Shown piece by piece: positions 402 through 3,400 of a stretch of 64,000 nt of DNA; position 1 is the first letter of the stretch, and each line of letters opens with the position of its first letter. The DNA comes from Octopus sinensis (taxonomy: Eukaryota), in assembly GCF_006345805.1 (NCBI RefSeq), contig NC_043009.1:64356001-64420000 (forward strand), in the 5' to 3' direction. Both the position numbers and the translations under genes were made by a program. The notes under the pieces are model-generated. The model was not told the DNA's origin, did not search any database, and saw nothing but the letters and a program-made list of their open reading frames with translations.

Positions 402-3400
402 CTGTAATATAGAAAAAGATATCAAGCTAAAATTTCTTAATATAATATGTAAGTAGTGATACAAATACTGGTTTCAATTTTTGGCACAAGGCCAGCAATT
501 TTGGTGGAAGGGGATACGTTGTTTGTTCCTTCTCGAGCCATGCCTGGCTCATAGGCGCCGGTTCCCTGGTTTCCTTGGTGTATAGATTCCCCACCTGGAC
601 GGGACGCCGGTCTGTCGCAGGTGAGCTGCAAGATGCAGGAGGAAAGAGTGAGAGAAAGTTGTGGCGAAAGAGTCAGCAGATGTTCGCCATTACTTTCCGC
701 CGGAGTTGCGTGGAGCTTAGGTGTTTCGCTCATAAACACACACATCGCTCGGTCTGAGATTCGAACCCGCGATCCCTCGACCGCGGGTCCGCTGCTCTAA
801 CCACTAGGCCATGTGCTTCCACAAGGGGATAAGCCGATTGCATTGATCCCAATGTTCACCTGGTATTTATTTTATCGAAACCGAAAGGATGAAAGGAAAA
901 GTCGGCCTCGGCGTGATTTGAACTCAGTTTTCAACCACCGGTTCAATCAAAGTTTAATTACGTAAAAAAATAAGGAAATCTTTGCAATGAGATGTATCTA
1001 TTGCATATCTTTTAGAGTAATTACTGTAATACCTTATAATCACGAGTTACATGTGTCTGCGTCCTTAGTTCGAATCGCACCAATTTCAACTTCACTTTTC
1101 ATCTTTGAGGCATTGATTATGCAATAATGAGAGACATACCGTTTACCTTTTACTTGTTTCAGTCATTAGAGTGCGTCCATGCTGGGGCACGGCTTTCAAG
1201 AATTTTTAGTCGATAGTATCGACCCCAGTACTTATTTTTGAAAGCCTGTTTATTCTATCGGTTTCTATTGCCGGACTGCTAAGTTACAGAGACGTAAATA
1301 CACCAGTACCGATTTCAAGAGATGCTGGGGAACACATGGGCCAATATAGTTAAAAACCCTAGATATACTTACCAGTTTATGCCACAACATATTGGAATAT
1401 TTTTGGTCTATCGTTATTTGCTGGACAAGTAATTTTTAATCGTCTTCCTCAGAACATCCATGTTATTGGTTGTTGAAGATTGTTCTGTATAATGATACTA
1501 ATTATTCGCGAATCCTACTATTGTCATTTTGTCAATTCTAACAACGATGGGTTCAGCTTGCAGTTTCTGTATATTTGCCTATGAGTCATATCTAGTTCGA
1601 CCATGTAATCCACTAATTTGAGGTTGGGGTAGTTGAAATGAAAAACGCTGTAACTGAGATAAAAAAAAAACCCGTCTACCTACTTACCGACCTCACAAAT
1701 TCCCTACTTAGACACGCTCTAGTTTATTGGACCGCCTGTTTCAATTATGCAGTGGAACATTAGCAAATTGCTACAATAGTTGAAGAAGATTATACAGATT
1801 TTCACTGCTTTCCGTTTGGTTAACCACACACAATCCTAGCATGACTCTAAAATACGATTCCTGTAATTTAAAAGCACCAACTACCAAAGCGTTTACCTTT
1901 TTCTCTGCTGGGGAGTTGACTTTTGTTTTATTTGTTCAATTGGTCCCTGTGAAAAAAATTTGCTATGCTCCAGTTTCCGCGAATTCCTACTCACCATCGG
2001 ACAAAATATCTGTTGAAGCAGGCGAATTTATTCATGTTGTTCTGGAGAAGAAGCGCTGATGAGATATCTTCTGTTTCTAAAGTGGGGAAAGAAATCTCCC
2101 GCTTTGGTAGAAGTTTAATTTCTTCTAGAAAAACTGTTATTACTTCTGTTGCGGTGTTGGTATTTTTAATCACCAAACAGGGCCGGATTTAGATACAAAT
2201 GTTATAGAAAAACAATCAAGCAGCGTTTGTATACGGACGTCTTTAAGTTGTATAATCCTCATGATAAACTCGTAATACTAAAGCAAGCAGTCGATGAATT
2301 CATCAGAGAAATGGATATGAAACAGAGATTAGAAACATACAACAAGGTAACGTTGAAGAGTGAAAAATTAAGAACGTTTTCCTGTTAGATACAGTCACAG
2401 AAATAATTAGAGAATTCGACCAAACATCGATATCTGGAAACTATACAATACACAAATTAAAGAAAATATTACATAAGAAAGGACTATTTGATGCTCCCAC
2501 AAAATTTGTGGTTGGAGTATCATTGATCATGGATATATTTTTTAATTAGGGCTGACCATAGACTATAAAGCAGTCAATTACACATTAAAAACAAGATATA
2601 ACAGACTATCATACAAGCACATTTCTACACACTAAAAAGAAACGATTTCGCATACACCACAGGAGTACAAAGGCCCAAATTATGACGCAACAAAGAGAAG
2701 CATGTAAGTGTTAAGATCAAAAGTTGGCGTCTATAGAATTTTGAAATACTTACAGATGGTGAATAAAATTAGATACGTGCCAGCAATTCCGAAACCTTCA
2801 ATAATGTAGATAATAAGAAATAGTATAATATTTGGTGAGTATATTTTGATTAAACCGCCAAATATGCTGAGTGCATTCGCGGCACAGAACATCTTAAATC
2901 GGCCGAATCTGCAAAAAAAAAAAAAGTATATATATATATATAGGCGCAGGAGTGGGTGTGTGGTAAGTAGCTTGCTTACCAACCACATGGTTCCGGGTTC
3001 AGTCCTACTGCGTGGCATCTTGGGCAAGTGTCTTCTGCTACAGCCCCGGGCCGACCAATGCCTTGTGAGTGGATTTGGTAGACGGAAACTGAAAGAAGCC
3101 TGTCGTATTTATGTATATGTATATATATATATGTATGTATGTGTGTTTGTGTGTCTGTGTTTGTCCCCCTAGCATTGTTTGACAACCGATGCTGGTGTGC
3201 TTATGTCCCCGTCACTTAGCGGTTCGGCAAAAGAGACCGATAGAATAAGTACTGGGCTTACAAAGAATAAGTCCCGGGGTCGATTTGCTCGACTAAAGGC
3301 GGTGCTCCAGCATGGCCGCAGTCAAATGACTGAAACAAGTAAAAGAGTAAAAGAGTATATATATAGTGACGAATTATTGTTTCAGTGTTTTTTTTTTAAG

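Follow-up and report, generated by a model that had tools for sequence, protein, structure and literature searches.

Why should one exon of a tandem gene pair differ several times more between the two copies than the intron that adjoins it? This question is raised by a stretch of 64,000 nucleotides (nt) of the Octopus sinensis genome (RefSeq assembly GCF_006345805.1, contig NC_043009.1, positions 64,356,001 to 64,420,000 of the forward strand), hereafter the window, in whose own numbering positions are given below unless another locus is named. It carries two genes, copies A and B, which from their sequences are predicted to be tandem SLC22/OCT-like transporters of the major facilitator superfamily (MFS; TC 2.A.1.19). 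An initial annotation of this DNA had described exon 4 as about five times more diverged between the copies than its flanking intron, and had proposed that the duplication is old, that the intron was recently homogenized by gene conversion and that selection has kept a patch of the exon from being converted. We found that the pair is a mosaic, in which short and strongly diverged coding segments are set within near-identical exon sequence and homogenized stretches of intron. The explanation that we favor, a conversion mosaic that has preserved an old island, has in our estimate a probability of roughly 85%.

Self-comparison of the window delineated a collinear segmental duplication whose two copies both lie on the minus strand; A spans about 197-17,600 and B about 45,955-57,800. 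From its translation and splice sites, copy A has five coding exons within the window, whose left edge cuts the gene, the remainder lying beyond it. The features on which the central comparison is based are the following.

Exon 4: copy A 2908-2754, copy B 48844-48690, minus strand; 155 nt, phase 1, encoding FGRFK, transmembrane helix (TM) 3, the SPN turn and TM4
Divergence island in copy A: 2815..2897, minus strand; A-type TM3 patch of 28 residues, 26/83 nt (31%) different from B
Divergence island in copy B: 48751..48833, minus strand; B-type TM3 patch of 28 residues, the partner of 2815..2897
Homogenized part of intron 4: copy A 2155..2753, copy B 48092..48689, minus strand; 25 mismatches in 599 aligned columns

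A sharply bounded island in exon 4

Exon 4 of copy A has an AG acceptor, a GT donor and an open frame, and its counterpart in copy B aligns to it without gaps and with identical splice sites. The two differ at 28 of 155 nt (18.1%), which changes 16 of the 51 residues, while the adjoining intron (2401-2753 compared with 48338-48689) has 11 mismatches and one 1-nt gap in 353 columns (3.4%), a 5.3-fold ratio (Fisher exact p = 3.9e-8). Our recount reproduces the figures of the initial annotation, including its 12 intron differences, which comprise 11 substitutions and one indel, and its roughly fivefold excess. It had put the synonymous changes at about 9 and synonymous divergence at about 24%; the Nei-Gojobori method counts 8.0 synonymous and 20.0 nonsynonymous differences, and the proportion of synonymous differences (pS) in exon 4 is 0.233. 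The excess is real, but it is concentrated in 83 nt rather than spread over the exon, and exon 4 is not the only exon with such an island.

The island at 2815-2897 holds 26 of the 28 differences and encodes TM3, the SPN turn and the start of TM4. It consists of two sub-blocks, 2850-2897 (16/48) and 2815-2829 (10/15), separated by 20 identical bases that encode KIYSPN. Outside it the exon resembles the intron, with two differences in the 61 nt at the 3′ side and none in the 11 nt at the 5′ side, and the density of differences is 26/83 within the island compared with 25/599 in the homogenized part of intron 4. When a block of 768 sites was permuted 200,000 times, the best 83-nt window never contained more than 20 differences, compared with the 26 observed (p below 5e-6), and the maximum chi-square segment was 2815-2882 (chi2 = 89). 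Within the island pS was 0.46 and the nonsynonymous proportion (pN) 0.27, corresponding to a synonymous divergence (dS) of about 0.7 and a nonsynonymous to synonymous ratio (omega) of 0.48; pS was 0 in the 3′ part and in the rest of exon 4. Because synonymous divergence is this high and omega is only about 0.5, the island appears to be old sequence and not the product of a recent adaptive burst.

The TM3/TM4 label originally given to exon 4 agrees with an alignment to OCT2, in which the exon corresponds to the FGR(F/Y)K loop, TM3, the SPN(Y/I) turn and TM4. Only two A/B differences fall in the 3′ portion of the exon that was converted, at 2769 and 2772 in TM4, where copy A has LI and copy B has IV. 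These differences are also paralog-specific across species, and in the OCT2 alignment the two residues directly follow the one that aligns with the TM4 tryptophan, which is reported to contact substrate in OCT1.

Two further coding segments are diverged in a similar way. They are listed here together with the remaining exons of the pair.

Exon 1: copy A 17199-17136, copy B 57401-57338, minus strand; 64 nt, with start codon and GT donor, 0/64 A-B differences
Exon 2: copy A 15346-14973, copy B 53972-53599, minus strand; 374 nt, TM1 and the large extracellular loop
Second island, TM1 part of exon 2: copy A 15200..15300, copy B about 53826-53926, minus strand; 18/101 A-B differences
Exon 3: copy A 11838-11735, copy B 52673-52570, minus strand; 104 nt, TM2, 1/104 A-B differences
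Exon 5: copy A 401-230, copy B 46159-45988, minus strand; 172 nt
Third island, TM6 at the 3′ end of exon 5: copy A 230..290, copy B about 45988-46048, minus strand; 15/60 differences (231-290)

The remainder of exon 2, where it is also covered by copy B of Octopus bimaculoides (extracellular loop), has a single A-B difference in 179 nt. Synonymous divergence is correspondingly far from uniform, with dS values of 0.09, 0.045, 0.28 and 0.24 for exons 2 to 5, respectively. Noncoding A/B blocks are 1.7% to 11.6% diverged, or 6.6% overall when a poorly aligned block upstream of exon 1 is omitted, and the intron adjoining exon 4 lies at the low end of this background. Substitution-type islands number three in about 0.87 kb of coding sequence, which makes up roughly 20% of the approximately 4.3 kb aligned, and none in about 3.4 kb of aligned intron. 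In a comparison of the protein family, copies A and B were 96% identical to each other outside the islands, compared with 70-78% to the next paralogs.

Age of the duplication and of the homogenization

The copies were compared with an O. bimaculoides locus (L001, CM046613.1), an Octopus vulgaris locus (L003, OX597826.1) and two O. bimaculoides proteins (P0004 and P0005); O. bimaculoides B was compared as DNA and O. bimaculoides A as protein only. Exon 4 of O. bimaculoides B falls in a gap of undetermined bases (L001 14501-14932) and was left out of the DNA comparison of the patch. The O. vulgaris assembly is very close to the window, a single-copy intergenic segment being 99.6% identical.

Protein searches retrieved two adjacent O. 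bimaculoides genes, XP_014786481 (P0005) and XP_014786482 (P0004). The first has an A-type TM3 patch (82% identical to window A and 57% to window B) together with A-type TM1 and exon 5, and the second has B-type TM1 and exon 5, including the exon 5 residues AS.IPP that it shares with copy B; along its locus, collinearity with the window begins upstream of B and extends as far as the sequence just upstream of A. The independent O. vulgaris assembly contains both types of exon 4, about 46.5 kb apart, with 24/83 differences between its own A and B islands. The island groups by paralog, since window A and O. vulgaris A differ at 4 of its 83 sites and window B and O. vulgaris B at none (B exon 4 at L003 13797-13951), and about ten patch residues are fixed between the A and B types across species. 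The occurrence of both types in O. bimaculoides supports a tandem duplication older than the split between this species and the O. vulgaris group.

Intron 4 clusters within species instead. At the 425 sites alignable in all five sequences (window A and B, O. vulgaris A and B, and O. bimaculoides B), A-B divergence is 4.7% within the window and 2.1% within O. vulgaris, whereas every sequence of the vulgaris group is 10.6-10.8% from O. bimaculoides B (10.8% for each window copy), and at 35 sites the four vulgaris-group sequences agree against O. bimaculoides. The same pattern was seen in the exon 2 loop (0.6% between A and B, compared with 2.2-2.8% to O. bimaculoides B), in exon 3 (1.0% compared with 3.8-4.8%, or 4-5/104) and at the 3′ end of intron 4 (2.8% compared with about 21%). 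With a duplication that predates speciation, clustering of the intron by species implies that the two copies exchanged sequence once the species had split. The window and O. vulgaris have several A/B-specific intron sites in common, which places the main homogenization before these two separated. The earlier proposal of an old duplication with a recently homogenized intron is thus upheld by the outgroup, the types of the patch being trans-specific and the intron not. Neither of the outcomes that it had named as refuting, introns that group by paralog as the exons do or uniform synonymous divergence among the exons, was observed. Three further features describe the flanks.

Paralog-specific middle of intron 4, copy A: 1079..2154, minus strand; bounds the converted tract
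Exon-4-proximal part of intron 3: copy A 3362..4350, copy B 48861-49911, minus strand; homogenized
Short interspersed element (SINE) in intron 3 of copy A: 2942..3357, strand not assigned; about 415 nt, inserted into a (TA)n tract roughly 34 nt before the exon 4 acceptor

The proximal part of intron 3 has 0 to 6 differences per 60 nt outside a CT/TC microsatellite (approximately 3426-3600). On the other side of the exon the converted tract ends at about 2155, where intron 4 of the two copies becomes unalignable; a comparison of its middle with B 46827-48091 found no residual A-B similarity (Smith-Waterman score 13, compared with 13.5 ± 1.4 for the null). In copy B this middle part is 90% identical to O. 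bimaculoides B, and is therefore old, but since no ancient homology between A and B was found in it, it offers no neutral standard by which to gauge how long ago the duplication occurred.

The comparison also points to continuing conversion. Around exon 4, the B copies of the window and O. vulgaris differ at 2 of 742 sites (0.27%) and the A copies at 30 of 743 (4.0%), as measured between window 2155-2908 and L003 60287-61040 for A and between window 48092-48844 and L003 13797-14550 for B. At six intron sites window A keeps the O. bimaculoides state while O. vulgaris A has the B state. This indicates that the O. vulgaris reference haplotype carries a tract converted from B to A that is absent from the window haplotype; of the 20 differences between the A copies at the 425 intron 4 sites, the tract accounts for 15.

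Three smaller observations concern the same pair. At 11826-11828, in exon 3, the codon GTT gives window A a Val, the B state, at a position occupied by Ala in both O. vulgaris A (L003 49533-49636) and O. bimaculoides A; a polymorphism might account for this, or a very recent micro-conversion from B to A at one site, but no weight is placed on a single site here. Window B and O. vulgaris B are almost identical elsewhere, yet in the TM1 island (53850-53880 compared with L003 8661-9034) they differ by two nonsynonymous changes, S/A and I/L, one of which matches the first-position state of the A type and could be due to micro-conversion or to diversifying selection. The SINE at 2942-3357 sits just upstream of the exon 4 polypyrimidine tract, and further copies of the repeat occur elsewhere in the window. 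Window copy A alone has it; O. vulgaris A and the two B copies lack it. Its insertion is therefore young or polymorphic, and it might influence the splicing of exon 4.

Selection and the alternatives

We propose that copies A and B are old tandem SLC22-like duplicates that would have evolved in concert through interlocus gene conversion. Repeated conversion tracts would have homogenized exons 1 to 5 and the neighboring introns after the O. bimaculoides split and before the window and the O. vulgaris reference diverged, with at least one further B-to-A tract arising only in the latter. The 83-nt segment of exon 4, which in the protein runs from TM3 through the SPN turn into the first residues of TM4, would never have been overwritten, and the TM1 and TM6 segments likewise, so that the unconverted island would keep the divergence accumulated since the duplication, synonymous sites included. 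Following the model of Teshima and Innan, selection may have purged haplotypes in which conversion had overwritten paralog-specific TM3 residues; linked neutral differences would then accumulate around the selected sites, and the 31% mismatch density would further impede heteroduplex formation.

That selection protects the patch, as the initial annotation had suggested, is plausible because substitution-type islands were found only in coding DNA. It is also in keeping with the sharing of the types across species and with the apparent integrity of both genes, which have open exons and canonical splice sites. A number of observations weigh against this part of the reading. Omega in the patch is about 0.5 and not above 1, and in the MFS fold both TM3 and TM6 lie at the periphery. 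Among 15 members of the octopus family the TM3 patch is the most variable segment, with identities of 21-61% compared with 45-78% in the non-island remainder, and at 50% A-B identity the patches of the two copies are no closer to each other than to those of other family members. The islands are 13-15% diverged between orthologs, and within the A type the patch has changed fast, 5 of 28 residues differing between window A and O. bimaculoides A, so that the type does not evidently behave as a strongly conserved one. A mismatch density of 31% could on its own resist heteroduplex-based conversion, with no need for selection. Other points count against the favored explanation: the grouping of the patch by paralog depends on one O. 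bimaculoides protein and on the very close O. vulgaris, islands in introns are perhaps under-ascertained because of unalignable stretches, and in some blocks the A-B divergence is only slightly under that to the ortholog, as in proximal intron 2 with 5.7% compared with 6.6-7.2%. Synonymous changes, moreover, cluster in codons whose amino acid has changed (7/14 compared with 1/14, p = 0.03), which hints at multinucleotide events, some of which are possible in sub-block 2815-2829. Weighing both sides, we lean slightly toward selection having been necessary to maintain the island.

The principal alternative is a neutral one, in which a weakly constrained TM3 diverged early by accident and was then frozen, heteroduplex rejection or mismatch repair ending conversion tracts at its edges. 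An explanation of this kind is discussed in the literature on divergence islands (PMC3728101), and the hypervariability of TM3, its fast evolution within type and its omega of 0.48 are what it would lead one to expect; heterology also bounds conversion tracts elsewhere in the pair, as in the middle of intron 4. However, the adjacent intron is equally or less constrained, yet it was homogenized right up to the exon, and a neutral barrier does not readily account for the concentration of substitution-only islands in the coding sequence. General recombination mechanisms further suggest that an indel-free heterology of 83 nt, lying within long near-identical flanks, should be co-converted with them. 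We regard a purely neutral origin as unlikely, while giving it appreciable weight.

It is very improbable that the duplication is instead recent, about 4% diverged, with one TM3 patch received from a third SLC22 paralog by short ectopic conversion. Donors would be plentiful in the large tandem SLC22 array and the B patch is nearer to the family consensus (FCVAD, SPNYTVF) than the A patch, but the distinct types were already present in O. bimaculoides and hence predate a species divergence of about 11%. A tblastn search of the window for a third copy of exon 4 or exon 5 returned A and B only. The 13 annotated octopus paralogs were considered as donors and rejected, since their highest identity is 61% for the B patch, which is thus closer to other family members than to copy A (50%), and 54% for the A patch.

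We give equally little credence to a recent duplication without any conversion, in which the patch alone diverged through intense positive selection, hypermutation or complex mutation. The pS of 0.46, the omega below 1 and the trans-specific types all argue against it, as does the clustering of the intron by species in spite of a duplication that predates speciation; what it would explain well is the 10/15 sub-block, where several codons carry changes of 2-3 nt and synonymous and replacement changes occur together, and the speed with which the islands evolve between orthologs. Finally, these tandem paralogs do assemble poorly, as the gaps in O. bimaculoides and the fused or truncated gene models illustrate, but an artifact of collapsed or chimeric haplotypes or of a misaligned exon is scarcely credible given an ungapped, in-frame alignment with identical splice-site bounds and an independent O. 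vulgaris assembly with both patch types at the same spacing.

The transporter family and the meaning of the mosaic

The assignment to SLC22 is drawn from profile matches and from sequence matches to solved structures. The assembled copy B protein scores above the Pfam cutoffs for Sugar_tr (PF00083, 106 bits, cutoff 22.3) and MFS_1 (PF07690, 76 bits, cutoff 33.4), while fragments from exons 4 and 5 alone score below the Pfam thresholds. Its top NCBIfam match is TIGR00898 (2A0119, organic cation transporter), which it matches end to end (23-506 of 506, E-value 1.5e-109) although with 367 bits it remains under the curated cutoff of 550.75. The O. vulgaris protein P0007, whose identity to window copy A across exons 2 to 5 is 97%, matches the solved OCT2 structure 8et9 (E-value 1e-70, residues 30-557) and also OCT1, OCT3, OCTN2, OAT1 and URAT1 (E-values of 1e-60 to 1e-70 for the OCT1/2/3 structures). 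Exon 2 encodes a TM1-TM2 loop of about 100 amino acids, in which C53, C83 and C129 are invariant and C107 is nearly so among 15 octopus paralogs. On one octopus chromosome SLC22 genes form a large tandem array, to which the pair belongs. Vertebrate SLC22A1-3 (OCT1-3) share the MFS architecture of 12 TMs and the large cysteine-bearing TM1-TM2 loop; they differ in that identity is only about 29% and that the octopus genes are a lineage-specific tandem expansion. The octopus exons of 104, 155 and 172 nt correspond to the vertebrate SLC22 exon pattern. A literature search on octopus SLC22 found nothing relevant.

A tblastn search with P0007 delineated the whole of copy B, whose exons are all open against this 558-residue template.

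Copy B gene: 33798..57401, minus strand; nine coding exons, stop codon at about 33,798

A protein search with exon 1 alone matched short Logan open reading frames (ORFs) of another paralog lineage and nothing else. Long ORFs in intron 1 of copy A (15482-16404, minus strand) carry a reverse-transcriptase-like FADD motif and appear to be a fragment of a retrotransposon of the type without long terminal repeats (non-LTR); the fragment has no counterpart in the aligned part of copy B. The O. vulgaris gene model of P0007 (OX597826.1, L003 10001-71288) is a fused one of 61 kb that takes in B as well as A. In O. bimaculoides, exons 3 and 4 are missing from the B model XP_014786482.1, because exon 4 lies in the assembly gap. 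A 38-residue ORF (P0006, ENA contig k141_488507) that is clustered at 90% identity with the octopus protein P0003 comes from a bacterial metagenome contig; it was rejected as irrelevant to the octopus family and looks like a database clustering artifact.

Divergence islands maintained against gene conversion are a well-known phenomenon, for which the framework of Teshima and Innan has been applied to human RHD/RHCE, the primate L/M opsins and yeast HSP duplicates (PMC3728101). As in those cases, the octopus genes are tandem paralogs that are mostly homogenized, introns included, with short exonic segments strongly diverged, at synonymous sites too, and shared across species. They differ in that the octopus islands lie in TM1, TM3 and TM6 and not in known specificity-determining residues, that omega is below 1 with fast evolution within types, and that the two octopus copies are not known to differ in function. 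An invertebrate parallel is found in GOT1p1/GOT1p2 of Tigriopus californicus, where exonic islands also stand amid converted sequence and population- or lineage-specific tracts make new haplotypes, much as the B-to-A tract may do in the O. vulgaris reference; the GOT1p genes are without introns, so that they do not offer the contrast between intron and exon that is seen in octopus (PMC3728101). The octopus SLC22 pair is a new and tidy case of a known phenomenon, in uncharacterized genes. As an invertebrate example of concerted evolution it is unusually clean, with a sharply bounded island, introns on both sides and an outgroup that dates the homogenization.

For the study of this family, one consequence is that the duplication is far older than the 96% A/B identity outside the islands would suggest, and that trees or dS-based dates for this expanded family will mislead if converted tracts are left unmasked. 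Concerted evolution also explains the mis-assembly and mis-modeling of these octopus paralogs. The three islands are the obvious places to look for functional differences, and if selection maintains the differences in TM3, TM1 and TM6, these segments point to the residues that functionally distinguish the two transporters. A more speculative extension, to which we assign a low probability, is that the octopus-specific SLC22 tandem array evolves as a cassette system, in which conversion keeps the scaffold uniform between neighbors, selection keeps the TM1, TM3 and TM6 cassettes apart and occasional polymorphic tracts reshuffle them. If so, distinct transporter variants, for example in the handling of neurotransmitters or xenobiotics, would arise faster than by point mutation.

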